Source: Thalia democratica (lineage: Eukaryota). From it: a stretch of 64,000 bases of DNA. Positions within the stretch are counted from its first letter, which is position 1, and every line of letters begins with the position of its first letter. Shown piece by piece: positions 671 to 62,994 of the stretch. Both the position numbers and the translations under genes were made by a program. The DNA lies in NCBI GenBank assembly GCA_965202585.1, contig OZ241832.1, forward strand, positions 10,106,001 to 10,170,000, read 5' to 3'. The notes beneath the pieces are model-generated. The model did not search any database and had not been told where the DNA came from. It was given only the letters and a program-made list of their open reading frames with translations.

Positions 671-788
671 ACAGCTACTAGAAAGCCGTTTTAAAATGTC
701 TCTCTGAGGTATGATCGTTTGACTCTTAACATATTCGCTTCATATACAAAACCTTGAAGCAAAATATTGTGAATTTTAGTGTGACGTA
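671..788 (-). repeat. Cassette copy
   Basis: Top strand ACAGCTACTAGAAAGCCGT ... GTGACGTA; spacing 99. Confidence 0.85.
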
Positions 789-2648
789 CGAAAATTAAGA
801 CATTCATTTTGAATAAACTGCTGTTGATAGTAATTAATTAACTCAAAATAATTTTATTAATTTAAGAAGTAAAGATAAAAAAAATTGTTTTATAATCAAA
901 TGTTACTTAATATCCTTTTTTTACGAAAAAAACTAAACTGAATTTAAAAACAGTTACTATCGGTTAAAATTAGTCTAATAAGATATAGTTTATAAATAGT
1001 TAAAAAATACTGTTTTGTATAGATCTAGTAGTTTATTTTTTTGGTTATTGATTTTAAGCAATATAGTTTTTTTTAGCTATTGTGATACTTCTTAAACAAG
1101 CATAAAAAATTATCAATTAAAGTATTTTAATTTAAACTTGTTAGAATAAATTTTATATATCTAATTAGTTTTTAATATCTAATTATAATGATTTTATTGC
1201 CATATTAGTTATTAAGTGTTTTATACTTATTTTTACATACAAGTGTCAAAACAATATATACTAACTAACAAAATTTATTTTATGATTTATCTACGGAACT
1301 TTATAAAAAATTTAAAAAAATCAAGTTCTTTGTCAGTTAAAAACTTATTAGATCGGTAGGGTAGGTAAACAATTTAAATATGTTTGTCTGGCTTATTTGT
1401 TGTGTAGTGGTCATTTTATTTCAATATTAGTTTGAATTGATGAAAACTCTATCTAACTAATTACAATAACGTAAACAAACTGTTTTAACTAAATACAAAA
1501 ATATCACAATATTTTCTACAACTCTTTGTCTATCTATAACAAGCAACACCCATTGTGGTTAAACATATTTATAAACTAAAGTTTTGAAACCAACTAGTTT
1601 TTTCGTAGTTTTAAATTTATTTTTTGTCATATTATGAAATCTTTTTCAACAATGAACTGACAAAACCGATCTTCTCAGCAGTAGTTGCAGATCGGTTTAA
1701 ATCTTACTATCAGTTGCTTATGTTATACAAAAGAATCATAAAATGATAAACAAAATAATAGTTTAATATTTGAGTTTATAAATTACAATTCTAGTTTCAC
1801 ACAATCAAGTATAGATTCCGAAGTGGTAATTGTTCGTCTACGAGTTTTGAGTTGAAATAAATGTATTATAAAAATAAAAGCTTGGTAGGTTAGGAAACTT
1901 GTTGCTGCTTGTTTGGTTTATTTTGTAATTAAAAGATCGTAAGTTAATAAAATTATAAAATTGGTTCGGAAGGTTAGATGTTTATAAAATTTTAAGGTTT
2001 TTAGAAAATAAATATACAAAACTTACGTTTAAACTGCTAAGGTTTGTATTTAAAGTTGTAAACTTAGTTTGCTAAATAATAAAAACATAGTATAATTTCA
2101 GTACAGATTTAAAATAATAAGTTTTATCTAAAATTTAATTGAAAATCTAATTTGGTTTCGATATTTATAATTTGTTTTGTAAATAAAACTTGTTGGTACT
2201 GATAATCGGGTAATATAAATTTAGTAGATGTTAATTAAAGTACATTACATCAAACAAACTATACTACAAGTTATAAAAATAAGTATCGTTACTTTAATTT
2301 GCAGTTAGAGCACTTTTAAGAATTGGTTTATAGAAAGACTAAGTGTTGTAAATTAATTTACATCATTTTTATAGACTTATGGATAGAAATCTATCATTAA
2401 GTGCATGTTCAAACTAAATAGAACTATTTGTGTTCCTTTTAATGAGTCGAGCTTCTAAACTATCTAAACCTGATAAAATTTAAGATAAGTATACATTTTA
2501 AATTAGTATGATTTTTTGTCGAAAATGGTTTTATCTAACAACTAAAAATAATTGGAACTTGATCTATTTATTTTTGATTTTGAGTTAATGTTTAGTAAGT
2601 AATTAATAAAGTGTGAATAAAGAAGTTGTAAATTTGAAGAAGTTAATT

Positions 2649-2767
2649 GCAGCTATCAAAAAGCTGTTTAAAATTTTGATTTCGGAAACTTTTATTCAAA
2701 TTTAGTATATTATCAGTTTATAATTAACACAGTGAAGTTACATGTTGTGGCTTTAAAAACTGACGTA
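2649..2767 (-). repeat. Cassette copy
   Basis: GCAGCT-N7-AGCTGT ... ACATGTTGTGG ... TGACGTAAG; spacing 100. Confidence 0.88.
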
Positions 2768-3938
2768 AGTCATTAAGAATTTAAAAAGTTATGTCCATTA
2801 AAAGTTCTAAGAAACTTCGTTTTAATTTTCTTCAAAGGCCTCGTTTAAAAAAAAAAGTTTGGGAAATCCTGTTTTACACTATGAATTGCTTACAATTTAA
2901 ATATCTCTTGAAGCTACATCTTTTGGTTTTGTATGTTGAATTAAGCATTTTAGAGACTTAAATTTAAAATCAGTAACTGCTGGTGAAAAAAATTATAACT
3001 GGAAGAAAAGTATCAGCATGTAGTTTTAAATAAAACAAATCATTGTAAAGAACAAAAAATGTTTTTTTGGAATTTCGGAAAACTGTTTTGAGATAGCTTA
3101 GAAGATTTTTTTTTACAATAATATCCCATAACTATTCACACGCTTTTTAATTTTAATATGAAATGTTTATTTAATTACAATTTAATTATTCAAAACGTTT
3201 AGGCCATAAATAAACATTTGTGTGAAACTCAGTAAAATATCTTTAATATAGGTTTATATAAAATTATTCTGTGTAGTATTTCATGTATACTTTTATGATC
3301 CTTGCATTTTAGATCATTTAATAAAAACCTATATATACAGTTTGAAACATTATATGTTAATGAATATAACTTACAAATTTCGCTCATTAAAATAATACAT
3401 AAAAACTTATAAACAAAATTACTATTTAAATTTATTATTTTCGCGTAGTAGTGATATTTAGTAATATGTCTTTTTTTTGTAAAATAACTTTAAATGATAT
3501 AATAAAAATTTTTGTTATAAAAGTTGTTAATTATAAATACAAGTAACTATATAGAATATAGTTATAATAATTTCCAATTTTATATTTTTTTTAACAAATA
3601 CTAACAATATAAGAATACAAAAACATTAAAATAAATATAACCGGTAGGTGTCAAGTTTGGCGTACAAAACTGCGAGAAAGGACAAAATTGCACGAGAGGG
3701 GACAAAATACCCAAGAATGCAAACATAAATACCAGCAGATTGATCAGTTTCAGATAAAACAGCAACTACAAGCTTTAAGTAGAAAGCCTCGAGTGTTTTA
3801 ACATAAGATAAAACTAAAATTTTAAATTAGATATTTATTTTTTCTTTCAGTTAATAAAACAATTAAATTAATAATATATCAATTTTTGTCACTAGCAGTT
3901 GCTGATTTTAAACTTTAGTCTAATACCTTCCAATTGCA

Positions 3939-4059
3939 TACGTCACTTTATAAAACCAATTCATGTAGCTTCAGCATTTTTATATATACGAAATGCACTT
4001 AAAACTATTTAGTTTTTACCTTGTTATTAAATTGTTTAAAACCGCACTCGAGTAGTTGT
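3939..4059 (+). repeat. Cassette copy (degenerate palindrome)
   Basis: TACGTCACTTTATAAAACC..CATGTAGCTTC ... ACCGCA-N7-AGTTGT; spacing 102. Confidence 0.65.
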
Positions 4060-5581
4060 AATTAATTATAACATTTTTTGCTTGAAATAGGTTTTAGTAC
4101 GATTGCTCAAAAATTGATATATGTAGTTTAGCAAAAGTATATTTCATTATCAACTTTTTATCTCTGTACTTGATCATGGAACTTAACTTATTTATCTATA
4201 AAGCTAAAGCTTGATATTACTATTTAAATAATTAAAAAAAAATAATTGTTAATTTTCTTGACTTAACTATGTATATATATTTTTAAATGTTTTAAAAGGT
4301 TTAAATATTAATTACCCGAGCAAAATTTAAAAATAAATTTAGTTTTACACTAGATTAATTTTTAAATATTTCAATTTGTTTTTAAAATAAAGTTTATCAG
4401 CACTATTGTAGGTTGATAAAATTATCAAAATAGAATTTGTTTGTAGTTAAGTATTATAAGTAATTTTTATTGTTACGATTAAAAGAATAAAAATGGTAAT
4501 ATTTTACAAAAAATAAAAAGTTTTTTAGTTAAGTTATGTAGAAATACTTCGATGATTAATATATTATATTTCATAAAAATATAATTATATATGACTTTTG
4601 AAACTTTGTACAAAGTGCTTGGTAAACAGAACTTACACGTTCTTTTGATTTAACGAACTCTTTAACTCAAAAATTAGGTTATTAGGACAATCTTATAATG
4701 TTTTTGTAAAAAACAAAGATGTAAACCTTCATATACATTAAATAACTTCGCTTAACAGTGCTAGACAGAAAACAAAAAGTTTGTAATATATAAAACTAAA
4801 TGCTTTAAAATATCATTATACAACTAGTATAATTAATTTATAATCCTTCTTTCACACAACTAAACATGGTTTTAAAAAGGGTATTTTATGTTATGAGTTT
4901 AAACTTAAGTATATGTATTTTAAAACAAAAAGCTTATCAGATAAAAAAAATATTGTTAGTTAAGTTGTTTTATTTTAGTAATTAATATTAAGCTTATTAT
5001 CAACAAAATTTGTTGCAAATAATTAGACATGTGAAAAGTATTAAGAGAATGAAAATAAAAATAAAACTTTATTTACGCTGAAACTAGTAATGTTTGTAAT
5101 TAATGTTCTACACTTTGTTTGTTTAATAACAAAAGCATTTGGTAATACTTGAAAATAACAATTTTTATTTGATATTAAATTGCAAATAATGAACTTGTTT
5201 TTAATATTCATGTTGTTTTTTGTAAATAGAGCTGTTATTAAAAATTAGGTAGATGTTACGTTTTTTATATGAATATTTTTTATATTTAGTTTTAGAAATA
5301 TGAATGTAATTCTTTTGCTATCTATTATACAAATATAAAACTATCTAAATTTTAAATTCAAATATTATTCAGAATTAAAACTCAGGTAATATGTCTGTTG
5401 AAGTTTTAAAAACTACTTAGTTATTAACAAAAATGTCAAAATAACATTTGGCGTATAAGTATATGTCTTGTTATGTACCCTATTTAAGTTTAAAAATCTT
5501 ATATAAGAGAAAAACAAAAAACTATACATTTTATTATCCATATTTTACTGATCATTTTAAACTTGGAATTTATCAATTGCC

Positions 5582-5697
5582 TACATCACATCAAAATATC
5601 ACATCAAGTTCCTTCAACGTGATGTATAAAATCCGACTAATGCTAAGTTATGATGCTAAATTATATTTATCTTGTGGTTGTTTCCATAAATAGCTAT
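5582..5697 (+). repeat. Cassette copy (degenerate)
   Basis: TACATCACATCAAAATATCAC; flanks homologous to the 17841 copy; palindrome mostly decayed. Confidence 0.55.
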
Positions 5698-6075
5698 ATG
5701 TTTGCCTTAGTTTATTCAAATAAATATTTTTTTCTGTTGTACAAGCGCAGTTATAATACGGTTCAGAATTAAGCATACTTACATTTATTAATACATTTAA
5801 CAAGAGTCATGCCATTAATTTTTTTGTGCAAGTTTGTTTAGAAATTTTAGCTGCTTGTTATGAGAATTTTTTCAATTTTAAAAACAAAAAATATTGAATA
5901 AACTTGTTAACTAGCCAAAAAATCTAGTTTCAATTATCTTTTAGCAATTAGGTATCAACCAGTGTCGCATGCACGTGATAATCATAGTTTTTAAAATTAT
6001 GAAATTTTTTTTTAGTAGTTAAGTAACAAAAGAGTTATCTTAGCAGCATTCTATCTAAGTTTTCTTTAATGTTCT

Positions 6076-6176
6076 TATGTCACGTTATAAAATCACATGA
6101 TGTATCTTTGACGTGAAAATTCAAAATTGATTTAACATAAGTAGTTCATAATATCAAACAGCCTATTATTAGTTGT
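6076..6176 (+). repeat. Cassette copy (shortened spacer)
   Basis: TATGTCACGTTATAAAATCAC ... ACAGCC-N7-AGTTGT; spacing 82. Confidence 0.6.
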
Positions 6177-7864
6177 AATAAACTCTAATAAAATGCTGTT
6201 TTAAAGCAGACTTTTTACAAAATCAGAAAGCTTACAATAATCTCAGAATGCTTAAAATAACTAGAAAATTAAACAACTCTCTTCTCAATTCTAATAACTT
6301 TTTAAACTAATGCTAGGTTAAAATTTCATTTTAAAACATGTTTACAGCTAATTAGGTCATACTTGAAATATTTCGGATAAGTTACTTAATATACTTATTA
6401 ACTGCAAAAAATAATTTAAATCAAATTCGAGTTGTATTATTAACTTTATTGTTTGAATTTACAATGTCAAAACCGTTTTCTTATTAAATAAAAACGTTTT
6501 AGTTGTAGTTTTATTAATTTATTTAAAATTCACTTCCGAACAACCAGATTTAAATCAGCATCCAATGCAAGGTTTGATAATTTTATATTTTCAAAGATCT
6601 AGTTGAATGATAAACTAAAAAGATATATTTTCTTACCAGCAGCTACTGATTTATTTAATTTTTCTGACATGTTTTATTCACTTGATGATTCTATATGTAG
6701 AATATAAAGTTTTTTAGTTAATACGTTTGTTAGATTTTTTTTAACTCTATTTATTTACCCATAATTTTAAATAGCTTGCCGGTATTTGGATTATTAAAAT
6801 AAAACTAATTTTAACTGCTATTTTAAAACAAGCTAAATAGTTCGATTTTAGAAAACCTACAATGTGTTGTAAAGTATTAAACTAAATAAAAATTTTCTTT
6901 TTATTTTTTAAAGTTCGTCCTTCAAAAAAATGTAAATTTCTATGAACTTACTGTTTACCTTCTAGCAACAACTTTAAGTTATCGAAATGTTGAACAAATT
7001 GCTCCTCAATTATTTTAATATTAAAAGTGTGAGTATCAGTTTGACTATATAAGTAAAAATTTACAATTACTGCCTGTTTGTTCATACTTAAAATAAATTA
7101 ATCAAAACCAATTAAAAAATTAAAAAAGTTTACAAAAAGGTAAAAGTAAGAATAAGTTTCCTACAATCTATCGTTAAATCAAACATACAGTTTAATAACA
7201 AAAACAATTTTAATGAATTAATTAAACTAGTTTCTAGTTTTACACCCTTTTTAATCAAAATAAACTTTAAGAGTTATATAACTATTGAGTTTTATTGTAA
7301 TGCATCAAAACAAATAGTTTAGGAAATTATTTCTTACTTGTTTGTTTGTTATATAAGTTTCTGTGTATAATATACCATAGTAATATGTACAATATATGAT
7401 TTTTATTGTAAATAAACTCAATTTAGACAGACTGATATTTAGATAATCTTTAAATAAACAAAAAATTTAAAAACATACTAGGTAAAATGAGCTTTATTAT
7501 TAAATAAACTAGAGTAAAACTTAAAGAAACTAATTAACATAAAACTAACAACAAAAACACTAAAATACAAAAGTTGTAATACACTTTGATTGTGTAGTGG
7601 ATGTGAATATTACTACAAGTAACAAATAAATGATAGTAATCTCTATTTGTTGTTAAACTAAAACGAGTTTAGTAGGGTTTAATAACTTTCACATGTTAAA
7701 GATTTTGTATGCAGCATCCTATTCTAATCGAGCTAATTTGGCAGGCTTTCTAATTCAACTAAGAAATTATATAGTTTTTATCAACTATGATACCCTTGTT
7801 TTGCTACAAATTTTAGGATCAAAGAGCAAAGTGCTTTATAGCTTTAATGGGATTTCATTAAATT

Positions 7865-7981
7865 ACAACTACTAAACAGTTAGATAAAATTGTTTTGGCA
7901 TAACTGACATCGACAACAAATCTTACCTGGTTTCTTCACAAAATGTTGAAGCTTTATGTTGTAATTTTAAGATGTGACGAT
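7865..7981 (-). repeat. Cassette copy
   Basis: ACAACT-N7-AGTTAG ... TGTTGAAGCTTTATGTTGTAATTTTAAGATGTGACG; spacing 98. Confidence 0.7.
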
Positions 7982-8754
7982 ATCATTTTAGGTATATTTG
8001 TGTCAGTGACTGATAGTGAGAAAAACAAGTTAGTTTTACTATGAAATAACTTTATTTGTTCATTATAAGAAATATCGGTTGTATTCAAAAAAAATATTTT
8101 GATAAGTTTTCTAAATAAACACAAAAACCGACTACTGGTGAGTTAAATTAATTTTTTCTTACTCTAACTTTTAAAAGTAATTTAAATCATAACTTTTATG
8201 TTTTTGTGGGAAAAAAAATACTATATGTCGAATGGTAAAGTAAAGTAAAGTTTGCTTAATATTTAATGTAGTTATTATTTTTTTGTATTAGACTAAAATA
8301 TCTAAGTAAGTGATGAAAATAATTTTTAAACCAAATTATAGAAATGTGGATTATCAAGAATATAAACAGTTAGTGCAAAATTAAAAGAATATCTGGCTTA
8401 ATTTAAAAATAATTAAAAATCACATAATTGAGTATGTACACATTGTAAATTAATAATACTAACAATTACTACGTGTAGATAACAAACACATCAAAATTTT
8501 GTTATATGACGAAATGACTAACATTAAATAAAAATTTTCTTAAAAATTAACGGTTTTGATGTGTTTATTTTAAAAAGATTTTTTGTTTATTTCGCGGTCT
8601 ATTTTTGGTAGTTGAAAAATTTAAATAAAATTTATGTTAGAAAATATTTAGAGTGATTAAACTGGTATGGATTAAAGTAGGGTTGCTACATTTCTACTTC
8701 TTTGTATAAAACTGCTTTAAAACGAAAATTAGCATTATATAACTTTAGAAGATT

Positions 8755-8863
8755 GTAGCTAATAAAAAGGTGTTTGAAAATTCCAACATTGCGACAGCAC
8801 AATCAACTTTGTACAAACACAATTGAGGATCGAAACTACATCTTACACATACAAACAAACGTA
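8755..8863 (-). repeat. Cassette copy (degenerate)
   Basis: GTAGCT-N7-AGGTGT ... GAAACTACATC ... ACGTAAGCAA; spacing 90. Confidence 0.55.
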
Positions 8864-9626
8864 AGCAACTAAGAGTAAGATTTAAATAGATCCACAACTG
8901 CTGCCGAGTAACCTTTTTACTCAGTTTATTATTAAAGAAGATTTCATAATTTAGAAAATATATATAAAACAACTGTTCATGAAATTAATTTTTAAAACTT
9001 AAAATTGAAAGTATGTAAGCAATGTAATATATTTTTGTAAGAGATGTGCAAACAGTTGTAGAAAATATTGTTATCTGCGTTTACTTAGTTAAAGCATATT
9101 ATTATTATCATAGTTGGTTGCGATAAACCAAACTGAATCATAGAAACCTATACAAACAATAAACAAGAAATAGTAAAAAAGTGGCTAACATAAAGTTATT
9201 TTTGTAAAATACTTTATACAATATAATTGGCTAGGTCCACATTGGATACAACTATTTTTGAAAAAAAACATCATTTAAGTTTAGTTGAATGACAAAATAG
9301 CAAACAATAATAATCTAAGACTTTCAAAAAAGTTATTGCAGTTAATAAACGAATTTTAGCAGGCTTGTTTGATTAAATTTCGCAGACTTTTTGGTAGTTC
9401 TGAGGTTTAAATATAATTTATGAATTTAACTCTATAAGTATGTCAAACTAAGAATTAAGATAAATTTTGAAAAAAAATTACTCTATTGATTCAATTTTAT
9501 TAAGTTAGTTTAAAAGAATAATATTATTTATTGTATTAATTATACACAAGTTTTCGGAATCGTACTTCAAGTTAATATTAAAATTATTCTGAATGGCAAG
9601 TTAACATCGTTTTAATTTAGTGAGTT

Positions 9627-9743
9627 ACAGCTACAAAATAGCTGTTAGAAACTAACATCGGCATACAACTAGCACACTAATAAACAAAGTAAGTTTATAG
9701 ACAATATGTTTGGAATATATATCGTGATTTTGAAAAGTACGGA
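9627..9743 (-). repeat. Cassette copy
   Basis: ACAGCT-N7-AGCTGT ... GTGATTTTGAAAAGTACGGAAGCAATT; spacing 98. Confidence 0.75.
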
Positions 9744-9946
9744 AGCAATTAAGAGAGATATCATAATAATATAAACAATTGAGATATATATATTTTTGTA
9801 AAACTTTTCAATAGTTAGAACAGTTTACAGACGTATACTTCTATATACAAAAATAAATCTAAACTTTAACTCAACAAAAACAAGTTGCATATTTTCCTTA
9901 TTATATAAAGATATTTAACAATTTTGAGAAACATTTTCATCTAGTG

Positions 9947-12400: not shown

Positions 12401-12507
12401 ATCTAGTGGAAAAATAAACTAAGAACTCTGCAAAGGCCTTGTTTGGCTAAGTACAAATTTCATTTACAGAAGATTCTTACAGCTATGAGAAAATCTAAGT
12501 TAATTTT

Positions 12508-45314: not shown

Positions 45315-45367
45315 GGTTAATTTGTTTAACTTTCAATAATTGTGAAATTACTCTTTTTTTTATTGCT

Positions 45368-50775: not shown

Positions 50776-51356
50776 AATCCACTTAAACAAACTTATTACT
50801 GACTTTGTTTTAATGTGGCCTAATATCTAGTATAAGTTTTGTAAATACTTAAATAAAAAATCATTAAAAATGTCTGTAAGAAAAACTTGTTATGTCGGCT
50901 TTGCAGACACTTTTTGTAATAAACAAGTCTTAAAAATTTATATAATGTTGTTTGTGAAGCATTCAGTTTTATAAACGAGCAAGTCAAATATTAAACGCAT
51001 TAAACAAAGTTTAATAAAAGTAAGTGATCTTTAAAACTCCGCATTAAGAGTCCAAAAATTATAGTTTAAAGAACTAATCAGTAAATTTTTCCATGTTTAT
51101 TTCTCATACCTAAAATTTAACGGTTTTTTATAAGTGCAACGCAGTGTTTAAATTACAAATCAAATTGAGTTAAATACTATTTTTATTAGATATTACGTTT
51201 GTATTACCCAGCACTTGTATGATAATAGAAATATCTTAATATAGCAGATCGGTAGAATATAAATATAGTAGAAATAAAAAAGTGATTTGCCTACCTCGAG
51301 TCCAAAAAAAAAAAAAATGAAAGTTAACGCAAATGATTGTAAGTTTGAAAAAAATT

Positions 51357-51483
51357 ACAGCTACCAGAAATCTTGTTGAAATCACAAGAAATATTTTACT
51401 TTCTAAAGTATCAAAATTGCTTAAACTCGGTTAATATATATAAATTGATGAAGCTACGTGTTTTAATTTTAATATGTGACGTA
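51357..51483 (-). repeat. Cassette copy
   Basis: TTACAGCTACCAGAAA ... ACTCGGTTAATATATA..GAAGCTACG..ATGTGACGTAAGCAATT; spacing 108. Confidence 0.85.
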
Positions 51484-52279
51484 AGCAATTAACATGTATT
51501 TAACTTGTTTAAGTTAGTAATTGCTAATTTCCTGGACAAGAAGTTGAAAGGTATTTATGTGGTGGACGAATTAGTAACTAAAACGTATTTCCGTCAAAAA
51601 TATTCTAGGACCAAATTAATAAGAGCGCTTTTTTATTCGTTCAAAATAAAAATCTTCTGAAATTATGACATTTATTGTATAAAAAAAGCTTGTTATAATC
51701 AAATTCTATTTATATGTAAAGTGTTGTGTTTTTTAATTTTTGCGTTAACAATTGAGACATGTCAAGATTTTGTAAAAGGAATTCTACTAGGAACAATAAC
51801 TGTCTTTTAAATAGTTTTTTACAAAAAATTGTTAAATTTAGGGAGCATCGAACTTTTAATACCAATGTTTAAAACAAATGAATTGTTGAACCTACGACTA
51901 GTTTTGTTTTTTTTTGTCAGGTAAAATCAGTTTCATCTTTATAATAGAGTTATAAGTTAAGGAATTTTTTCTTTTTTTACTATAACTAGTTGTTTTTTAT
52001 ACAAAAATTAAAAATACGTATTAGTCAATCATATATGACAGTTTTTTGTTTAGCTAGTTTAAACATTAATACGTTTTATGTAAAAATGTTTAAAATTCAA
52101 CGAATTTTTTTGGCTTTTTTTCAAAAACACAGTTTTTTTTGTCTTAACTGTCAAAGTCAAGGTTGTTTAAGGTTTCTAGGCAACCCTGAAATACGATGTG
52201 CAATATAAAAACAAAATCACAACGCAAAATGTGCTACTGTCAACAATTTTTCACAACAAATAATTATTTCAAGTGTTTT

Positions 52280-52398
52280 ACAGTTGATAGTAAACTGTAT
52301 AAACTTCTGTTTCTAAATTTAGTTAATAAAACTAATATAAGCGATAAATTTATTCAAAAATTTTTAAGCAACATGTTCCGGTTTTATAAAACGACGTG
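52280..52398 (-). repeat. Cassette copy with compensatory palindrome
   Basis: ACAGTT-GATAGTA-AACTGT ... ACATGTTCCGGTTTTATAAAACGACGTG; spacing 100. Confidence 0.78.
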
Positions 52399-53676
52399 AA
52401 CGACTGAGAGATTTTGTTTGTGTCAGTGACAGCTCTTGAGAAAAGCTAACTTTTCCTTTCAATCAAACTTTTAACAACCAGTTATATTACACAAAGATAG
52501 ACACAATTATTAATGACCATTCAGATTCAGAGCATAAAACTGAACAAGAGCTACACAACTTGTTGCAAAAAAAAGAAAATACAAGCAGCCCTCAAGAAAA
52601 AAGTACAGCAGACTGAGTTAGAAATGTTAAGTAACTCAAGTTATTAAATTCCAATTCAGCAAAATTTTCCAGGATATGTTGGAGAAACATCTAATTATAA
52701 AATAGATTGAAAAATAAATAAAATACCCAGGTGTACATCAGATATTTTAAACAATAAAAACTCCACATACCCAGAGATGGTAATAGAGGTTTCATTACAT
52801 GTTCTGTTTTATAATGTGACATAAGCAGTTGAGAATCTTTATTTAAATCATAAAATGCTGGTTGAAATTTTTATTTATGTTATAAATTACATTCAAAATA
52901 ATTTTATTTATGTAAGAGTATAATACTTGTAAATAGATTTATATTGCTATAACCTTTAAACAAACGACTAAGTAATTTTACTATAGTAATTATTTTACAA
53001 ACTTTTAAAAAACTATTTTTAATGAGTTTATAAATATTAAACGTTGGTTGTTAAACTTTATCGATTTAAAATCTCGTTGTACTGTACATATTATTCTATC
53101 AAGCATAATGACAAGTTTAGTATGTTATCTTAAGTATAAATTTTTATAAACAATATTAAATATAGTTTTCAAACATATTTTATTGATTGTTTGTTCATTT
53201 GTATAAAATATAACACAATTTTGTATAAAATGCTTTATATCAAACATGTTTATTTTTAACAATTTTGTCAACATTAATGCAAATAAGTTCTATCTCTAGT
53301 ATTTCCTGTGTTAAAAAAAATTCTATTTCATTCTTTAGTAATCTAACGCTTTATAAACTAATATATCTTTTTCAGTCAATAAAATAGATTATTTGCAATT
53401 TTCCAAGTAAGAAGAGTGTTTTAAACATTTTAACCTCATTAAGATCTGAAATAACTTATTAAGTTTACAATTACAATTTACAATTAGTTTTTTTTAGGAA
53501 ATAAATCTTGTGGTACAATAAACTGGAATTAACAACTTATTGTGTGTTTTCATTGCAAGCTTGGTATATTATTTGTAAATAGTTTGTAAATGTAACAGTC
53601 GTTCAACGCTTGAGTTGGAACTATTGAAATACAGAAATAAATTTATCAGACTATTGTATATTTATATGAACAAATT

Positions 53677-53792
53677 ACAGCTACTAAAAAGCTGTTTAAA
53701 ACTTTTTTAAAATGAAACAAGGCTATTTGTCTAGCTAAGTCGATATGTTTTAATTATGTTGAAGCTATGTTGTGGTTTTAAAATGTGAAGAT
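53677..53792 (-). repeat. Cassette copy
   Basis: ACAGCTACTAAAAAGCTGT ... TGTTGAAGCTATGTTGTGGTTTTAAAATGTGA; spacing 97. Confidence 0.87.
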
Positions 53793-54668
53793 AGTAATTT
53801 AGAGAAATATAAACTATACAATTACTTGCTGCCGAGAAAGTTTATTTTTTAGTTTATCATTTATTATAATTATAAATAATAAAGTTTTCAAATTTTCTTA
53901 TAGGATGCTGATTAAACAAAAGGATTTAAAGTAATTAGTCAAAATTTCAACTTAGATATCGTAGTTAAAAAGACGGTTTTATCTATTTAAATTATAGTTG
54001 CAATCAAACACTTATTTTCTAAAACCATTGCATGTAGTTATTGTTTATTTGAGTATAAATTTAGGTAAGTATTCTACTAATTCATTCACAGAGTTTAAAT
54101 CGTTTACTTTACTAATTTAAATATTTTATTTTTTAAAGCAGACATTATATATTAAATCAACCAAATTAAATAATAAAATGGTATATAAGCAACTAATATT
54201 AATAATTAGTACAATAGTAACGAAGATCAAAATAATTTTTTAATAATTAAGTATTACATGATTGGAAATGTCCGTATTGAAAAATCGATATACTTAATAA
54301 AAGTTTTATGTAAGTAGAATATACATCAAATATATTTAAATAAAAAAGAACTAATAATAAAGTTAGATATCCAAAGAAGCTAATGTTTGTAATAAGTTTT
54401 TGTTAGCAAAGCTTGATTGTTAACATTTCACAGACTTTTAGGCTGGTTAACATGTTTAATCAATATTTTTGTTTTTAAAATTTATTATCTTTATAAAACC
54501 AGCAATTAAAATTTCGGAACAAATTTGCATAAACTATAATAGTGTATTAGAATGCGAAGACTCTTGTTAAATGTATTAATCATTGCAAAATTTGTAACTG
54601 TTATAAGTTCTGGGATATTTTATAAATGCACATGTATAACAGACAACAATATATTATTTGATTAAACT

Positions 54669-54781
54669 ACAGCTTAAATTGAGCTATTTTAAATTACCAA
54701 CCATATTGTAAGTATTTACATCAAAATCGGTTAATATATATCACGTCGAATCAACTTGTTGTGATTTTATGATATGACGTA
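54669..54781 (-). repeat. Cassette copy
   Basis: ACAGCT-N7-AGCTAT ... TTGTTGTGATTTTATGATATGACGTAGGC; spacing 94. Confidence 0.85.
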
Positions 54782-56809
54782 GGCAACTGAAATATTTCAA
54801 AGTTAAAATGATCAATAATATGTAGATAAAAAACTTGTAATCTTTTTAGTTTTACTAACAATTAGTTATTATAAATAAACTTTAATAGGCTACAGACTCT
54901 CACATGTACTTGTACCTACAAATACTTTTTTAATAAATTTAAAAATGATTTTTTTATATTCCAAACAATATATATACTAAGCTTTGTTATTGTAAACAAT
55001 ATTTTATTGATATATTTAGATTGTTTTATATTTTGTAAAATACATAGCAAAAGTGTTATTTTAAATGTTAAAAATCTAACATTGATACTACTTTATATAA
55101 AATGCTTACCATCCAACTAGTTCTTATCAGCAATTCTTATCAACAAATCTAATAATTTCTAATCTAACAAGCTCATTTTACTAAACAAATTATAAACAAT
55201 ATAAGCATTTTTTTTTAAATTAGATTTTTATCAAAACTTGTCACTTTCTGGCATTATCACATGTTCTTGTTATTAAACAAACTGAGTATACAACTTTCTA
55301 AATTTTAAAAAACCTAAGTTCAATTTTCTAAACATTAACAGTTTAAGTATAAGTGTTAATTAATTTTAATTTTCGTGTTCTTATAACTATATACACGACT
55401 AATTATTTGCAACAGATTTCGTTGATAATAAACTTTAATTTACTTACTAAAATAGAACAACTTAACCAACAACATTTTTTTAAAAATACATTAAGCTTGT
55501 TTTTCAAAACATCTAGCTTAGCTCAAACTTAAAACAAAACAGAAATATTTTAAACCATAATTTGTTGTGTGAAACAAGAGCTGTAAAAAATTTATACAAA
55601 TAGTAAATTATTGTTTTAAAAAATTCAGTTTTATAAATTACATATTATTTTTTTCTATCTTGCACAGTTATACGAAGTTGTAAACTAATATGTTTATGGA
55701 GATTTATTTATTAAGTTTTTAACAAAAACATTTTAATTTTGAGCAACAAAACTTAATTTGGAAATAAAGCACTCCTTAAATCAAAAGAATCTGTTAAATT
55801 TAAATAATTAACTTTCAGCTAAATTACTATGACTTCTATCACAAAAATACTTTCTATAAATCTTTGTTTCCAAAATGTATCCTTTTTTTATATTGTCAGC
55901 TTTAACAAGACTATTTTAAATTATCCACTATTAAAATTACATTTTTTACAGGCATATTTTAAAAAGCTACCTTAAAATTTTTAAAATTGCTGGTTGCAAC
56001 TAATTTTTGTAATTTTACGACGTGACGTAGTCATATAAGAAATATTGATTTTATTAGTTAAAATAATTACGTTTATTATTTAACTAGTTATAATCAGCTG
56101 CAGTAAATATATTTCTAAATTAAAAATTAACCGAATCGGCACCGTTTTAAAATTTATTAGAATTGTTTATGTTGTTGTTCAATGTCTTAATTATTGTAGG
56201 TTAAACTACACGTTTTGATTTTTACAAATGACGTAAGCATTTGAGATAAAATTTAATTACGTCAGTAATTCAGGTTTGCAAAAAGTTTAAAAAAGTTGTG
56301 TTTTTCTGAACTTCTTCCAGGATTATGAACGTACAATTTTTCAGATTATTTTTATTATATATCACATTCAAAGACAAAAATTGATATAAGGTTTCGTTTT
56401 TTTTATAAATTTAGTTGATCACAAAACGTAAAAAACACATGGACAACTTTGAAACTATATTTAATCCTATAAAACAAGGTTGTTATTTTTATATTAAAAT
56501 AATACATTACCATTTGGAAGTTTTCACTTTTATAAAAACCTTTTTTTTTTGTTTTTTCTATTAAGCACGATTATACTAAAAAAGGTTTGTAAATAAGTAC
56601 ATATTATTTAAAGTACATCAAATTTTTTTGAGTATTTTAGCTTTGTGCTACTAAACCTAGTTTTTAGAATATGGCATACATTTAAATCAAATTGTTAACT
56701 TACAACTCGATTTCAATATGGTTTGACTTTATTTATTAAAGTGTATATATTTAACATGAATATACTATGAGCAACATGTATCCAACTGGTAATATTTTAA
56801 AAAAGAAGT

Positions 56810-56925: not shown

Positions 56926-57409
56926 ATTAATTAAGAAATACCGATTAGTTTTTATTAAAGTTAACAAATTAATCGTCACTATTAAAATTTATTGTTATAC
57001 TCACTTAAAAACAACAAATCTATTTACTACAATGTTTTTAAGTATATACTACAAAAATAATTTTAAACTATTACTTAAGATAATACTTTGGTTTGTAAGT
57101 TTTTAATGTTTTTATTTTTATTATTAATTTAGCTGTTATCAATTTTATTACTTTTGTTATGTATACTATGTAGTTATTATTTGATTATTATTCCTAATAT
57201 GAGTATCATTATTTTTAATTATTTGACTTATTGTTAACTTCATTATATTTTTCGTCTTTTTCCTTTTTTATTTTTATTAGTACTGTTGTTATTGATTTTA
57301 ATTTTTTACTAATGAAAGTAAAAGCACATGTATAAACAAAGGTTTTAATGGCTTTGCACTTCAAGGCTGCTTTCTGAGGCATTCAGCTAACATTAATTTT
57401 AATTAAATT

Positions 57410-57527
57410 ACAGCCACTAGAAAGCTGTTTGAAATTAGAGAAATAAACAGCACTTCTATTTAAATATTACACTCGGTTTATAAACAAAAATTCAAAACTA
57501 TATTTTTTGAGTTTTTAAATTGACGTA
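57410..57527 (-). repeat. Cassette copy
   Basis: ACAGCCACTAGAAAGCTGT ... ACACTCGGTTTATAAAC ... TGACGTAGG; spacing 99. Confidence 0.9.
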
Positions 57528-57676
57528 GGTTATTGAGAGATATCAAGTTAATATATAACTTTAAACTTAAAATATTAACTTATTGTGTGTTATTTCTGTT
57601 TATTTAAAATCATATAATCAACTACCAGTTGAATCTGCATACATCAGCAGAATTGACGTAGATATAAATAAATATT

Positions 57677-57786
57677 ACAGTTACTAGACAGCAATTTGAA
57701 ATGTCGTCCATATAGAAGAATTGGTTTGAGTAAATTTGACTTGCTTTGTATGCAAAACGTTTATGATATATTTTTATTTTCAGTTA
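57677..57786 (-). repeat. Cassette copy (degenerate)
   Basis: Inverted paralogue of the 29178 copy, same 91-bp spacing. Confidence 0.62.
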
Positions 57787-58023
57787 ATCTTTATAGACGT
57801 AGAAAAATCACACCTATTGTAAAACTGAAGAAATAAGTTACACTTACTGCAAAGCTGTTCTATATACAAATAAACAAAGTTATATAAACGTTTTAATAAT
57901 TACACTTGGTTTATGAGCTATACATTAAAAGTGGAAGCTGGGATTCTACTATGAGATGTAAAAACATTAAGACATTCTATTTCAATCAGTTAATATTTTA
58001 ACATAACATCTATTATATATACA

Positions 58024-58141
58024 ACAGCTTATAAAAAGCCGCTTGGACCCTTTAAAATTTCCTAGAAACCTAGATATAAATCACACTCGATTTCAATACT
58101 ACACATTATAGCTGTATACTTTGTTTTTAGAATGTGACGTA
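58024..58141 (-). repeat. Cassette copy
   Basis: ACAGCT-N7-AGCCGC ... ACACTCGA ... AATGTGACGTAAGCAATTGAG; spacing 99. Confidence 0.85.
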
Positions 58142-58836
58142 AGCAATTGAGAACTTTAATATACCTGCTATTTATAGTGCGATATTCTATCTCTAGGCTT
58201 AGTTTTCCTTTTAAAATATTTTATCATTTGAATTTTATTCAGATGTATACTTGTTTTCAAAAATATTTTTTTTAAAGTTTTTGATTAAGATCAAAGTATA
58301 GATTGAATGTAAAAGCTACTAAAAACTTATTTCTAGTTTATTACTAGTTTCTAATTTATTAATTTATTTAGATATTTTCAGGTTTGAATAAATATCCGTA
58401 TAAGTACATTACGTATAAGAATGTTTTCTAATATATCAAATGACACATAACTAAACATTTACAACTAAAATATATAAAGATTTATAAAACTAATAAAAAT
58501 TTAGCTATGTCACTTAGTTACTAAAAATTAACTAGATACGTTTTTATAAGTTATAACTTTTAACAAATACCCTTCGTAGAGCTTGGTCGCTCAGAAATCG
58601 TAATTTTTTATGGTAGATGACAAGTATATTCAAAAATTATATTTAAAGTGTTTCATATATTGTTAAACGAGCAGTAGTTATAATTTTCAATAAAGTTCAT
58701 TAACCAAATTAGCAGAAATTTAAATATCTTAAAAATCAATGGAATTGTTAATCATTGTGTTGGCTATCGTGGGCTGAATTCATACTTCTTTATAGAACGC
58801 TGCATCAATAATCGGTTAGCATTACTTAAGCAGACT

Positions 58837-58955
58837 GGAGCTACTAAAAAGCTGATAAAAATAACAACTTAAACAAAATCAAAATGTTATTACATTTCAC
58901 ACTTATCTATATTCGTTACATCGAAGCTATATGCGGTGTTTTATAATGTGACGTA
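58837..58955 (-). repeat. Cassette copy
   Basis: GGAGCTACTAAAAAGCTGA ... GAAGCTATATG..TTTTATAATGTGACGTAAGC; spacing 100. Confidence 0.9.
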
Positions 58956-59710
58956 AGCCCCGAGAGAAAACTTTTAGATAAGAAAGTTTCTTTTGTCATT
59001 TTACCATTATAAAGTATATAAAAAATATTTTTAAGCAATTGACAACTTTAGTGTAGCTGTTATTTATAAATATCATGTATCTTTTGTTGGTTTTCCTTTA
59101 AACTTTCTATACAATTTCAATAGGCTACAGACGTATACTTGTGTTTATAAAGTTTTTTTTTTGATAATTCTGAGTAACAAAATTAAAAATTCAATTTGAA
59201 AGTTGCTTTATAATTTTTTTATTCTAATATATTTATACATCAAGGAAATTTTAATGGTTTTTTTTTGGGTTTACTATAACGTTAAAGTACACTATTCAAT
59301 ATATTAATTGGCACATAATTGAGTATGTACACGTTTAAAACCTATGAAAAAATATTCTGTCAGTATAGTTGACAACTACTTTTTGAGAAGTGATATATTC
59401 ATCAGAAATTTAGCTGTTTGGCAAAGTAACTAAAAATATACTAAAAATTTTTAGAAGCTGTTGTTCTTAGCACATGTCTGTAAGTTCAGTTTGTTTACTC
59501 AGAGAGCTTATATAAGATTTTTGTTAATAAATTATATATACAAACTAACAAGAATATAATATTTAAAGTTATTGATCAAATTGCAACAATTTCTAAATTT
59601 GTTATAAATGATGAGAATGTTGTTCAATGTGTTAAATCTTATGAGCTGAATTCGTACTTCTGAAAAAAGGTTGCAACAATTCATCATTTAACATACTACT
59701 TCAGCAGGTT

Positions 59711-59828
59711 ACAGCTACTAGAAAGTTTTTAAAAATTTGAACTGAAACGCACACTGTAATCTGCAAGTAAATCACACAATATTTTATATACATAGAAGCT
59801 ATATGTTATGATTTTATAATTTGACGTA
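59711..59828 (-). repeat. Cassette copy
   Basis: ACAGCTACTAGAAAGTT ... GAAGCTATATGTTATGATTTTATAATTTGACGTA; spacing 99. Confidence 0.9.
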
Positions 59829-60063
59829 TGCCTCTAAGAGAAGCTTTTCCGACGATTGAATCCCTTTTGTTAGTTTATTGTTATAACATATTCATTGCTT
59901 GGAAAGAAATAAAACTTGTGAAATCAATGTTAAAGTGTAGTTATTTATAAGTATTTTGTAATGTTAATACAAGTTATAGTTCGTACTGAATATTTTTCTA
60001 TCAACTTCTGTATATAATTTTGCTTCAAAACAGCAGTTAGAATTAGTCTTACATGAATAATTG

Positions 60064-60178
60064 ACAACTACTAATAAACTGTTTAAAAAATAAAGTAAAA
60101 CCCAAGTTTAAGTAAGATTCACGCATATTAAATATATAACATACTAAACTATATGTTGTGGTTTTATAAAGTCACGTA
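60064..60178 (-). repeat. Cassette copy
   Basis: ACAACT-N7-AACTGT ... ATATGTTGTGGTTTTATAAAGTCACGTAGGC; spacing 96. Confidence 0.82.
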
Positions 60179-61225
60179 GGCATTTAAAAGAAAATATAAA
60201 CACATCAGCAGCTGCTGAATTAAAATAAATTTTGAAATTTTAAGATTAAAATGTATTTATAATTTTGGTATTGATATTGTATTCAAGCCTGTATGGGACG
60301 GTGGTGGTTAGCAAGTTAATTTAAACTAAATTAAACTAGCATATTTTTGTTAGGAAAAGACAGTTTTATGTTTTTTAATACAAATAATTCAATAAAAGGG
60401 AATTTCATTAATGATTGCGGTTATTTAAAATCAAATAAATAAAGTAATAATTATAATTAATAAAACCAATTCCTTTAATTTTCAAAAATATTTTCTTAAA
60501 AGCAATGATGAAAACCATTTTCAAAACCGAATTTGAGTTAAAGAAATGCAAAAACAAGAAATATTAATAACTGCTATATAAGTTAAGAATATCAATTATA
60601 AATAAATTATTTACCACGTGATTAAATATACCTATAGTAAACACCAAAGATTTTAATAAAAGTCATGAAAAATAAACATATATCAAAACTTAGTTTTTAG
60701 AAAAAATAACTAACATTAACTGTTTAAGAATTTACAAGAAGTAATTTCTCTTGATAACTGTAAAAAAAATCATTTTAGATTTTACTAACTGTTTTCGAAA
60801 ATAGACAGTTTTAATCAACTCTTGTATTTGTGACCTTCGAGTTATGACCAAAATAGTAGTAGTTTCATTTTTGAATCATATTATTGAATTTTTAAGAAGA
60901 ATTGGTGCCAAAGTTAAACTTTTATAAACTGAAAATGTTTTTGCGTGTATTAATTAATACTAATCACTTTATTGCATTTTTCGAGAAGAACATTTTCACG
61001 ATAAGTCACTGTTGCACGGCGTCAGCCTACGACAAATTTTAATTTTGTTAGCAATTTTGAGGGAAATTTTAAAGAAAATAAGTAGAACTGCGTAAATTTA
61101 CAGTAAGCTATTTTAAACTATTGAAAACTTTCGTCCCAAGAAATGATTAAATACTCAGTTCAAGAGTATTACAAGTAACTACATTTATCTCTATGTGAGT
61201 TACAGGTTAGTAAGTTAGTAATTTT

Positions 61226-61344
61226 GCAGCTACTAGTAAGCTGTTTCAAACCATGTAAGAAATACTACACCAAACTAAAAATTTAATACTTTGTTTATAA
61301 ACAATTGACCGAACTTACATGTGGTGATTTTGTAGTATAACGTA
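61226..61344 (-). repeat. Cassette copy
   Basis: GCAGCTACTAGTAAGCTGTTTCA ... TACATGTGGTGATTTTGTAGTATAACGTAAG; spacing 100. Confidence 0.87.
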
Positions 61345-62058
61345 AGTTTTTGAGAGATTCGTTGGAAATATTGATTATTTTCAAGTTTAAGCCAAAACAA
61401 TTATCATCTAATTAAAATGTTGTTATATCTTAAGTAGTTATTAAGCATTGAAAGCTATGTTGTATATTTTTATAGTTGTAAACTAAAATAAAACTTAATA
61501 ATTTTTTTAATCTAGTAAAAATTTTATGACAAATCAATTTCAATATCATTTGAATATAAAAATTAGAAATGTTATTTTAAATATTGAACAATTTAAAAAA
61601 ACGTTCTAGTCTAATATTTAAATATATGAATCATTAACGTATAACATGAAAATTAACACAAATATACTAAATTACAAAGTAAAAACAAATTTTGATTTTG
61701 TAGTTGAATAAAGTAATATTTAAAAATAAGCATAACACTTCAATTTATATACTATTTGTTGTAGCTACATGTTGTGGTTTTCTAATATTAGATCAACAAA
61801 TGAGAGATAATTTTACACAAATGTAACTAATTGCAAATTAAATGTATCATTTAGTAAAATTCTTATAATTTAACTTTTACAAAAAACTATACAATTATAT
61901 AAAGTCATAACAAAACTGGCAATTAAAAAAGTTATTAGAATCAAGGAGGTTATTGTTTTTGATTAATTTATAATTAATTGCCGAATTAATACTACTAGTA
62001 TAGTAGTACTAAGCGTCAATGAAAATGGAAAATAAATTCGATATTGTTTTAGTTAATA

Positions 62059-62177
62059 ACAGCTGTTAAAAGCTTGTTTAAAATTACTAAACCAGCTTAG
62101 AGAAAATGTTTTATAATAAGACTTAATTTTTATACAAAATATTAAAACTACATATTACAGTCATGTATTGTCACCTC
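62059..62177 (-). repeat. Cassette copy (degenerate)
   Basis: ACAGCTGTTAAAAGCTTGT; inverted paralogue of the 21731 copy. Confidence 0.55.
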
Positions 62178-62471
62178 AGCTTATATATTATTCGTTGTAC
62201 CTACATGTTGTGTTACATCAACAAATGAAAGATAATTTTAGTACAAACGTAACTGCATATAAGATACATCATTTCAATGAGCTTACTAAAATTAAAAAAA
62301 AAAATAGCTTCAGATTAAGTTCAAACAAAACTGGCACAAATTAAAAAAATTGTTTGAATCGAGGAGATTGTTGTTTTCAGTTTGTATATTATTGTTTGCT
62401 GAATTCGTACTTCTAGAACAATATTAAGCGTCAATCAAAATGGAAAACAAACCGATTTGTTTTAGAAAATA

Positions 62472-62589
62472 ATAGCTGCTAAAAAGTTGTTTAGAATTGC
62501 TGAACTAGCTTGGAGAACAGATTTAAGTAATAAAACTTAATTTAATAAAAATATTCAAACTTCATATTATAGTTGTGTGTTGTTACGTT
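62472..62589 (-). repeat. Cassette copy
   Basis: ATAGCT-N7-AGTTGT ... TGTGTTGTTACGTT; spacing 99. Confidence 0.65.
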
Positions 62590-62862
62590 AGCAAGTGAGA
62601 GGTGTATATGTTATATTCACTAGTAACTGTGGTAAGATAAAACATATTTTTTGTTAGAGTTTCTGTAAAAAGGTTTTACAATTAGAAGTGGGCACAGAAG
62701 TATACTTGTGGATACAAATAATGTTTTAAAACATTTGCTTTAAAATAAATCGGCCGAATTTTGAAATACTAATAAAGACAAAATACTTTTTTTAAGAAAA
62801 TTTTATAAATAACTTTAAAATAAATAAAAAATGAATTTTAAAATAAAATAAACTAGTTTATT

Positions 62863-62994
62863 ACAGCTACTAGAAAGCTACAGAAAACTAGAATTAACAG
62901 AAAAGGAGTACATTCTTTGAATCAAACTCGATCAAAACTTTGAAATTTAATATAACTTTTTGAAGTAACATGTTGTAATATTATATATGGTGTA
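62863..62994 (-). repeat. Cassette copy (12-nt insertion)
   Basis: ACAGCTACTAGAAAGCTAC ... GAAGTAACATGTTGTAA..TGGTGTAGGC; inverted paralogue of the 20923 copy; spacing 113. Confidence 0.82.

Follow-up and report, generated by a model that had tools for sequence, protein, structure and literature searches.

The type-I 21U-RNA clusters of C. elegans are described, in PMC3597512, PMC6436959 and PMC10197682, as thousands of autonomous mini-units with an upstream motif related to that of small nuclear RNA (snRNA) genes, set in gene-poor clusters on both strands; according to PMC6436959, PMC7884074 and PMC7917550, SNAPc acts at the nematode promoter of PIWI-interacting RNA (piRNA), and Integrator terminates the transcripts. 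The spliced leader (SL) RNA of Ciona is 46 nt long, is encoded by at least 670 gene copies, has the Sm motif AGCUUUGG and donates a 16-nt leader of the ATTCTATTTGAATAAGGT type (PMC7986045); the Sm site of the U7 type is RUUUNUCYNG (PMC5054213). The locus treated here is a 64-kb window, C8:10,106,001-10,170,000 of an 802-Mb tunicate assembly (positions are those of the window unless a contig or locus is named), that carries an array of short, diverged cassettes on both strands, each with the consensus TCTCTCAATTGCTTACGTCACATTATAAAAtCACAACATGTAGCTTCAAcgTtTTGTATATAAAtcGAGTgTaA, ca. 25-30 nt without consensus, then TAATTTnAAACAGCTTTCTAGTAGCTGTAAT. It is held here, with a confidence not far above even, that the array belongs to a tunicate gene family with a few thousand members, each a short non-coding RNA (ncRNA) gene with a promoter of its own, and most likely an undescribed family; in the literature searched, mini-genes with snRNA-type promoters in such mass were found for nematodes only, and no comparable tunicate small-RNA clusters were found.

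The host was characterized by its spliced leader and is on that basis taken to be a tunicate: the Ciona-type SL followed by GT (ATTCTATTTGAATAAGGT) was found 1,048 times in the genome against 22 times for the control (≤1 mismatch), nematode SL1 gave 0 matches in the genome, and a Hydra SL-B-like pattern, an approximate query, also gave 0; the placement in a non-nematode animal by the first-pass annotation, an earlier reading of the window, agrees with these counts.

Compared with the type-I 21U-RNA clusters, the array is alike in that each unit has an snRNA-like upstream motif of its own, the clusters are gene-poor, of Mb scale and on both strands, and the unit-specific sequence drifts; it differs in the motif set (TCTC-N6-TKACGTCA, CACAAC and TATA; no Ruby motif), in the spacing (ca. 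1 kb here, a few hundred bp in C. elegans), in a 29-nt block present in all units with ca. 100 nt constrained downstream, in the lack of a 1U signal, and in the tunicate host. With U6-type (type 3) genes the cassettes share the distal element, a TGTATATA(A/T)A box and comparable element distances; here, an estimated thousands of diverged copies stand against tens, no Rfam match was obtained, no clear oligo-T terminator is present, and the TATA box lies 8 nt closer to the distal element. Like the SL RNA arrays of Ciona (PMC7986045), the family is highly repeated, belongs to a trans-splicing lineage and has a short conserved 5' segment ending with GU in a putative stem; its sequence is unrelated to the 16-nt leader, Sm sites are not enriched, and the copies are diverged and on both strands, not a homogenised tandem repeat. 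The likeness to U7 snRNA consists of a short variable 5' part followed by a U-rich ...CUUUCUAG, which resembles RUUUNUCYNG (PMC5054213), with an snRNA-type promoter upstream. U7 was rejected as a candidate: GCUUUCUAG is off the consensus (2 nt shorter, PMC5054213), a UCUUU box is lacking, the consensus fold shows no adjacent GC-closed 3' hairpin, and the copy number is off by three orders of magnitude; the Rfam U7 model gave no match in the window and three sub-threshold matches in the genome, all away from the arrays (25.6 bits and E 0.7 for the best; gathering score 34).

Array, promoter and genome-wide distribution

Copies in the window: The cassette profile was seeded from a single copy (26040-26260) and iterated with nhmmer until converged; 66-70 copies were obtained, spanning 657-63007 with a median spacing of 935 bp, and the TATA motif and the palindrome were both present in 52-53 of them. 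Single motifs exceeded expectation: TGTATATAAACCGAGTG, 10 found for 0.23 expected, and TCACAACATGTAGCTTC, 22 for 0.22 (both ≤3 mismatches); TTACGTCA, 13 exact matches for 2.0; 22-mer AACAGCTTTCTAGTAGCTGTAA, 16 for 0 (≤2 mismatches). Coding content was nil by the searches made: no ORF (open reading frame) of ≥90 aa is present, stop-free stretches are about as long as in shuffled sequence, the tRNA scan of the window gave none, and Rfam (gathering and E-value thresholds; window and 20 other loci) gave no family at the cassettes; G+C is 23-26% throughout. The first-pass annotation had put the number at some 54 or more cassettes, about one per kb on both strands, with the same motifs in the same order, in a gene-free region; all of this was reproduced, and the array proved larger than stated there.

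Layout: Strands are assigned blockwise, not at random: mostly minus at 657-16146, plus at 17829-45492 and mostly minus at 46059-63007. Orientation switches at ca. 16.1-17.8 kb (16146-17829, divergent) and at ca. 45.5-46.1 kb (45492-46059, convergent). Paralogous units recur in the plus and minus blocks with their order rearranged, and an inverted duplication of old date is suggested by this; the multi-unit group at 20909-22257 is an inverted duplicate of 63007-61729 with ca. 88% identity. The locus is also present, on DNA contigs, in a close relative (organism B) at ca. 3-5% divergence. At 58837-58838 the core of the unit 58813-58960 ends with AGCTCC and that of the organism B contigs with AGCTGT; of these two changes, one is a polymorphism within organism A.

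Geometry: Of 101 units, 82 have 41-42 nt between the distal core and the TATA motif; of 113, 84 have 46-51 nt between the TATA end and the palindrome. With a start 24 nt past the TATA motif, as in U6, the distal element falls at ca. -85, the CACAAC box at ca. -56 and the TATA motif at -33..-24, and the predicted start precedes the conserved T-run by 19 nt (interquartile range 18-21). The usual position of the proximal sequence element (PSE) is ca. -56; the distal position of -85 is similar to the placement in U1 genes.

Comparison with the snRNA genes of the same genome: These genes were located with Rfam models (U6, 33 matches; U1, 42 matches) and their flanks were read. TGACGTC[A/G] was found ca. 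83 nt upstream in five of five independent U6 genes, with CTCTC-N6 ahead of it in three of the five; the full element CTCTC-N6-TGACGTCAY lies at -92/-93 (U6) and -83/-86 (U1). In the U6 genes, CACAAG-like and AACCGACG motifs follow, and a (T/C)GTATATATA box ends 23 nt ahead of +1 (TGTATATATA at -33..-24); the U1 genes have this distal element too, and no TATA box. In the cassettes the distal element is TCTC-N6-TKACGTCAY. The snRNA loci (ca. 87 kb of strand) were scanned with a position weight matrix (PWM) made from cassettes only (TCTCAATTGCTTACGTCACA columns), the 11 best matches of which all fell exactly on the U6/U1 upstream elements; at a score of ≥15 the same matrix gave 36 matches in the window and 2 in the shuffled window. 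The cassette TGTATATAAA is the same motif as the U6 TATA at -33..-24, TATA-like words being common in AT-rich DNA; the cassette CACAAC and AAACCGAG resemble by eye the U6 CACAAG and AACCGACG, the PWM scans for them not being specific. With this element and the fixed geometry each cassette looks like an snRNA-type external promoter, in keeping with the proposals of the first-pass annotation that the units are individually promoted ncRNA mini-genes and that their promoters are linked to the SNAPc class. A tunicate snRNA-type promoter grammar (TCTC-N6-TGACGTCAY and TATA) is also provided, of use for annotation and for the design of expression cassettes.

TCTC-N6-TGACGTCAY occurs 1,626 times genome-wide against 21 for the control, largely in tandem arrays; the element is therefore characteristic of genes that this genome holds in many copies. 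Tandem arrays with the same element were noted at C2:18,624,121-18,717,811 (period ca. 1,191 bp) and at C1:101.3-102.2 Mb, 113.02 Mb and 35.69-35.74 Mb; these would be further multi-copy genes with the same promoter element. U6 genes form inverted pairs (L021/L022, L023/L024, L027/L028); the two members lie 0.8-6 kb from each other and are identical in promoter and flanks. A likeness of TAGTAGCTGT to the TAGCAGCTGT at -23 of U1 was rejected; it holds for one U1 paralog pair only.

Genome-wide distribution: The 22-mer core was found in at least 815 places of the genome, the reversed control in none (≤2 mismatches). Among the matches listed, about nine in ten lie in four clusters (C8, 8.4-10.2; C7, 4.2-6.2; C6, 7.4-9.1; C2, 17.8-18.2 Mb), with a few singletons on C5, C6, C7 and C9; confinement to a few loci, which the first-pass annotation had named as support for a gene cluster, is what was found. 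Since the 22-mer filter is passed by only 16 of the ca. 53 complete window copies, the size of the family is estimated at ca. 2,000-3,500 units; 69 further copies were obtained in twenty 10-kb samples from places of 22-mer matches. In a metagenome scan the exact 22-mer gave 0 matches and a degenerate 18-mer matched 98 contigs, none with a cassette, i.e., by chance.

Subfamilies: The C2 cluster consists of a young tandem repeat of 4.38 kb (L002, C2:18,062,001-18,072,000), each repeat holding two cassettes, the variable zones of which are 95-100% identical between repeats, unlike those of the old diverged C8 array. In the C6 subfamily (L005:4359; L006, minus strand, 5978; L007:8503 and, minus strand, 9527) an AGTATATAAAC box is kept and is followed by the 22-nt core at the customary distance; the distal promoter differs (GAAAACGATAACAAACTG...TTCGTAAACTAAC, without TTACGTCA), and AAGTTTGT stands ahead of the core. 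In a dispersed "long" subtype (C5, C6, C7) the distance from TATA to the core is 56-67 nt, the segment ahead of the core is GC-richer and kept between chromosomes (e.g., GTAGACTCCTAGTCCGAACAATCCG), and ca. 70 nt past the core a conserved CAAG(C/A)C(T)4-5 follows that could be a terminator. The C6 and dispersed subfamilies keep TATA and block despite the changed promoter or leader, which points to the block as the core of the family.

Constraint between copies and the predicted RNA

Information content was determined over 113 units and identity by region over 14 paralog pairs. The former is ca. 0 from TATA+13 to palindrome-13; positions of the block carry 1-2.4 bits each, and past GTAA the value falls abruptly (1.9 bits at +17, ca. 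0.1 at +21). Identity of the pairs: promoter, 77%; TATA region, 77%; block, 78%; +21..+120, 74%; +121..+300, 69%; variable zone, 63%; flanks 400-700 nt off, 58-59%. The variable zone is not distinguished from the far flanks (p=0.13) and is distinguished from its neighbours (p 2e-4 to 6e-7); this zone, the ca. 35-40 variable nucleotides of the first-pass annotation, evolves neutrally (63% vs. 59%), like a spacer or leader. The statement made there that the motifs are far better conserved than spacers or flanks stands for the variable zone and the far flanks and fails for the 100-300 nt past the block, which are also conserved in the pairs. Old copies keep promoter and block while the spacer between them drifts, unlike uniform repeat decay, and this indicates, as judged by sequence comparison, selection on individual copies of promoter and block.

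G+C is raised only from -150 to +100 around the unit, there is no strand skew beyond +100, and the sequence downstream of the block is common only within subfamilies. Because constraint and the GC rise extend to ca. +100, with no skew beyond and with the downstream likeness within subfamilies, a product of roughly 100-130 nt is suggested, likelier than a tiny RNA of the 21U kind.

Block: The 29-nt block AATTTnAAACAGCTTTCTAGTAGCTGTAA spans -8 to +20, counted from the first A of ACAGCT (113 units). The loop between the palindromic arms, given as seven variable nucleotides in the first-pass annotation, is conserved (TTCTAGT; TTCCAGT and TTTTAGT are the commonest variants). The block holds AGCUUUCUAG, a pyrimidine run followed by YAG, and a terminal GUAAUUU; AGCUUUCUAG resembles the Sm motif AGCUUUGG of Ciona SL RNA and the U7-type RUUUNUCYNG and fits neither exactly, and GUAAUUU could pair with the U1 5' end of this genome. 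The canonical Sm site RAU3-6GR occurs at background rate (13 of 113 units within +19..+170), no counterpart of the block was found near U1/U6 genes by PWM scan, the consensus fold of the "long" subtype gave only a 6-bp stem, and a literature search for the block sequence returned no relevant paper.

Predicted unit: We infer transcription, start site, RNA length and polymerase of the units from sequence features. An external snRNA-type promoter would be composed of the distal TCTC-N6-TKACGTCAY ca. 85 nt upstream of the predicted start, CACAAC at ca. -56 and TGTATATAAA at -33..-24; transcription would start, by analogy with U6, ca. 24 nt past the TATA motif and ca. 25 nt ahead of the palindrome; the first ca. 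15 nt of the RNA would be an unconstrained leader, followed by the common 29-nt block (AAUUUnAAACAGCUUUCUAGUAGCUGUAA) and by a body of ca. 100 nt kept only within subfamilies. The block may serve as a shared recognition or processing site, bound by protein, possibly of Sm/Lsm-like kind, or with a splice-donor-like GUAA end. Segmental duplications, both tandem and inverted, would have enlarged the family, and in most copies promoter and block would have stayed under purifying selection.

Polymerase: In most animals a TATA box combined with an snRNA-type upstream element predicts Pol III. In this genome U6 has a TATA box and U1 has none; by this analogy the TATA box of the cassettes suggests Pol III. 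The five U6 genes examined end in T6-T8.

Several results weigh against short independently promoted ncRNA genes as proposed here. With respect to the promoter, the whole-cassette hidden Markov model (HMM) had no match at the snRNA loci, the consensus alignment of cassettes and snRNA loci was weakly significant, the matrices of TATA, post-TATA motif, middle box and block were not specific at these loci, and the distal element is the only part robustly common to cassettes and snRNA genes. With respect to termination, the predicted leader shows no depletion of TTTT (31 units vs. 34 expected), a T3-T5 run lies just ahead of the block, the first downstream T4/T5/T6 runs are near background and mildly delayed, with a small excess 40-60 nt past the palindrome, and a Pol III-type oligo-T terminator signature is weak or absent in the cassettes. 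A start at the block itself, with U1-like spacing from the AAACCGAG motif, is an alternative possibility, with which the placement of the distal element agrees less. With respect to structure, no covariation was found for the hairpin (arms complementary in 86.7%, and in 86.3% after shuffling of the 3' letters), and the fold of -25..+125 is slightly better than that of a control region (z -0.77 vs. -0.35). Compensated double changes occupy only five cells of the arm alignment. Of the first-pass element ACAGCT-N7-AGCTGT the palindromic arms remain, but the conserved unit is the whole 29-nt block; its conservation is at the level of primary sequence, and the hairpin is neither supported nor refuted.

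If transcribed, the units would be among the largest chordate ncRNA gene families (a few thousand genes over several megabases), would represent co-option of the snRNA promoter on a scale otherwise known only for nematode piRNAs, would imply that the snRNA machinery can be recruited repeatedly for mass families of small genes, and would define a new RNA, strictly conserved in its 29-nt core.

Alternative explanations

Each unit might instead give a capped or Pol III transcript of ca. 20-30 nt that corresponds to the variable zone, with the downstream block as a signal of pausing, termination or 3' processing (3' box/Integrator), as in the 21U clusters of C. elegans. This would account for autonomous units in the thousands, each with an upstream element of snRNA type, that occupy both strands of gene-free clusters of Mb scale, for a predicted start 19 nt before the conserved T-run and 25 nt before the block, and for a variable zone that is unique to each unit and drifts as freely as the 21U sequences; a SNAPc promoter combined with Integrator termination has its nematode precedent in PMC6436959, PMC7884074 and PMC7917550. 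This explanation is nevertheless judged unlikely. Constraint is not confined to the promoter (block, 78%; +21..+120, 74%; flanks, 59%): the 100 nt past the block are as conserved as the promoter and GC-enriched, which a mere terminator would not need. The variable zone shows no 5'-U peak and no position above 0.12 bits, i.e., no base signal at a fixed offset; against ca. 380 kb of the same genome the zones matched only paralogs and chance 14-16-mers, and their GC of 28% is near background. The segment ahead of the block in the "long" subtype is kept between chromosomes, like a structural RNA rather than a free guide. The analogy to 21U tiny RNAs drawn in the first-pass annotation is not upheld by these data. 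An independent tunicate counterpart of the nematode 21U system, in which thousands of mini-genes on a co-opted snRNA promoter would each yield a short RNA of their own, the unit-specific leader would be the guide and the 29-nt block a handle for processing or loading, is only marginally more credible and likewise improbable.

No better placed than the tiny-transcript explanation is one in which a short first exon would have the block as its 3' end (...CUAGUAGCU), with the donor AGCU|GUAAUUU, the units being a second donor RNA of SL type or first exons of spliced ncRNAs. SL RNAs carry their donor in the 3' arm of a stem, and the candidate donor of the block would be so placed; conservation stops sharply after GTAA (1.9 to ca. 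0.1 bits), GUAAUUU is complementary to the AAACUUACCUG U1 5' end at six of eight positions, and one subfamily has a CTAAC-like branch site and (Y)AG 30-55 nt past GT, then AAGTATGA. Tunicates trans-splice, with highly repeated SL RNA genes (at least 670 in Ciona, PMC7986045). The canonical leader ATTCTATTTGAATAAGGT is, however, present on its own (1,048 vs. 22) and the block is unrelated to it; Sm sites are at background rate (13 of 113), the pattern of branch site and AG is limited to the one subfamily, and neither composition nor skew shows a longer transcription unit beyond ca. +100.

Slightly less probable again, the cassettes might not be genes: they would be amplified protein-binding DNA modules, the palindrome being the site of a dimeric factor, or mostly dead copies of one or a few functional snRNA-type genes, kept alike by recent duplication or gene conversion. 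CAGCTG-like half sites, typical of protein binding, are found in the palindrome, which is conserved without covariation; many copies are fragmentary or have damaged blocks, and the C2 cluster is a young homogenised repeat of 4.4 kb. Uniform decay or conversion is not what the old copies show, though, as at ca. 60% flank identity they retain promoter and block with the zone between them at neutral level, and the order and spacing of the motifs mirror real U6/U1 promoters.

Promoters and 5' ends of a fast-evolving family of small-peptide genes with tiny exons are very improbable: a CRE-like site with TATA is ordinary Pol II promoter grammar too and splice signals past the block are possible, but no ORF reaches 90 aa, open frames match those of shuffles, the stops of ATG-led frames past the block differ in position between paralogs, and no pair was gained with tblastx over blastn, its matches falling in all three frames. 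A transposon family (MITE, Helitron-like or SINE), for which the high copy number and some pairs alike over only ca. 400 bp would speak, is just as remote, since about nine in ten copies, among the matches listed, lie in four clusters and are not scattered, duplications span whole groups of units, in some cases with inversion, conservation is motif-wise and not uniform, an external promoter would be left behind by retroposition, and no shared termini were seen (terminal inverted repeats and target site duplications were not formally searched).

Coordinates and minor observations

Table 1. Features of the array; positions in the window, except for copies of the "long" subtype (last line), which are given by locus; numbers in brackets name single units.
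Feature	Position	Strand	Basis
Exemplar complete cassette, best-scoring plus copy	26065..26212	+	profile search
Exemplar, TTACGTCA core of distal element (consensus TCTCTCAATTGCTTACGTCACA), common to U1/U6 genes	26071..26078	+	U1/U6 flanks, PWM
Exemplar, middle box (consensus CACAACATGTAGCTTCAA), PSE position ca. -56 from predicted start; PWM scan not specific	26089..26107	+	
Exemplar, TGTATATAAA box and post-TATA motif (C/T)CGAGTG	26113..26129	+	cf. U6 TGTATATATA at -33..-24
Exemplar, variable zone; predicted start ca. 26146, 24 nt past TATA motif	26130..26162	+	U6 geometry
Exemplar, family-wide 29-nt block, 6-bp palindromic arms (26171-26189), GTAA end	26163..26191	+	
Cassette, complete	657..795	-	profile search
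Cassette, complete	2630..2778	-	profile search
Cassette fragment, promoter half	2895..2956	-	profile search
Cassette fragment, promoter half	3928..3971	+	profile search
Cassette fragment, promoter to TATA	5569..5658	+	profile search
Cassette, short variable zone	6064..6186	+	profile search, spacing
Cassette, complete	7840..7988	-	profile search
Cassette, degenerate TATA	8728..8875	-	profile search
Cassette, complete	9599..9756	-	profile search
Cassette, complete	12480..12636	-	profile search
Cassette, complete, paralog of 32192	13071..13210	-	profile search
Cassette without distal element	14112..14227	-	profile search
Cassette, complete	16004..16146	-	profile search
Cassette, complete, paralog of 54792	17829..17974	+	profile search
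Cassette, paralog of 56042	19651..19783	+	profile search
Group of 4-5 cassettes (20909, 21304, 21676 fragment, 21729, 22100), inverted duplicate of 61729-63007	20909..22257	+	profile search
Cassette cut off inside block	23108..23229	+	profile search
Cassette, complete	25209..25355	+	profile search
Weak cassette fragment	27160..27216	+	profile search
Cassette, complete	28040..28201	+	profile search
Four close-packed cassettes (28800, 28992, 29178, 29470), paralogs of 58152-57384	28800..29599	+	profile search
Cassette, complete	30244..30382	+	profile search
Cassette without distal element	31282..31399	+	profile search
Cassette fragment, promoter half	31687..31752	+	profile search
Cassette, complete	32192..32335	+	profile search
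Cassette, complete	34458..34600	+	profile search
Cassette, complete	35177..35305	+	profile search
Cassette, complete, paralog of 48467, homology ca. -200 to +190	40785..40943	+	profile search
Cassette fragment, promoter half	42277..42354	+	profile search
Cassette fragment, promoter half	44096..44182	+	profile search
Two cassettes (45179, 45359)	45179..45492	+	profile search
Two cassettes (46201, 46554)	46059..46554	-	profile search
Two cassettes (48107, 48467), palindrome and GT lost from block of 48467	47967..48467	-	profile search
Cassette, degenerate block	49159..49300	-	profile search
Cassette, lone plus copy within minus block	50655..50797	+	profile search
Cassette, complete	51339..51494	-	profile search
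Cassette, arms ACAGTT/AACTGT (one of few compensated changes)	52255..52412	-	profile search
Cassette fragment	52796..52834	-	profile search
Cassette, complete	53665..53805	-	profile search
Cassette, complete	54654..54792	-	profile search
Cassette (56042) and fragment (56246)	55897..56246	-	profile search
Four close-packed cassettes (57541, 57772, 57961, 58152)	57384..58152	-	profile search
Cassette, core AGCTCC (AGCTGT in organism B)	58813..58960	-	profile search
Cassette, complete	59685..59841	-	profile search
Cassette, complete	60033..60191	-	profile search
Cassette, complete	61217..61358	-	profile search
Group of cassettes (61807 fragment, 62180, 62233 fragment, 62602, 63007), inverted duplicate of 20909-22257	61729..63007	-	profile search
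Copies of "long" subtype	L004:3044-4066, 5513-5661; L008:2325-2473, 7546-7692; L011:3857-4028; L012:4790-4934; L013:3713-3862		

Hairpins: AT-rich long hairpins (L004:618-734, both strands; L011:4296-4379; L012:7856-7956) matched unrelated microRNA (miRNA) precursor models at E 1e-3 to 6e-8, all below gathering scores, and are probably plain inverted repeats; that of L011 lies ca. 300 nt downstream of a cassette.

Spliced leader copies: SL copies are dispersed over all large contigs, with periodic arrays on C26 (ca. 15.1 kb) and at C4 80.16-80.42 Mb. Three of them (L138:1501-1518, L139:1501-1518 and L140, minus strand) have no upstream sequence in common and look like retro-inserted, already trans-spliced cDNAs, not SL RNA genes.

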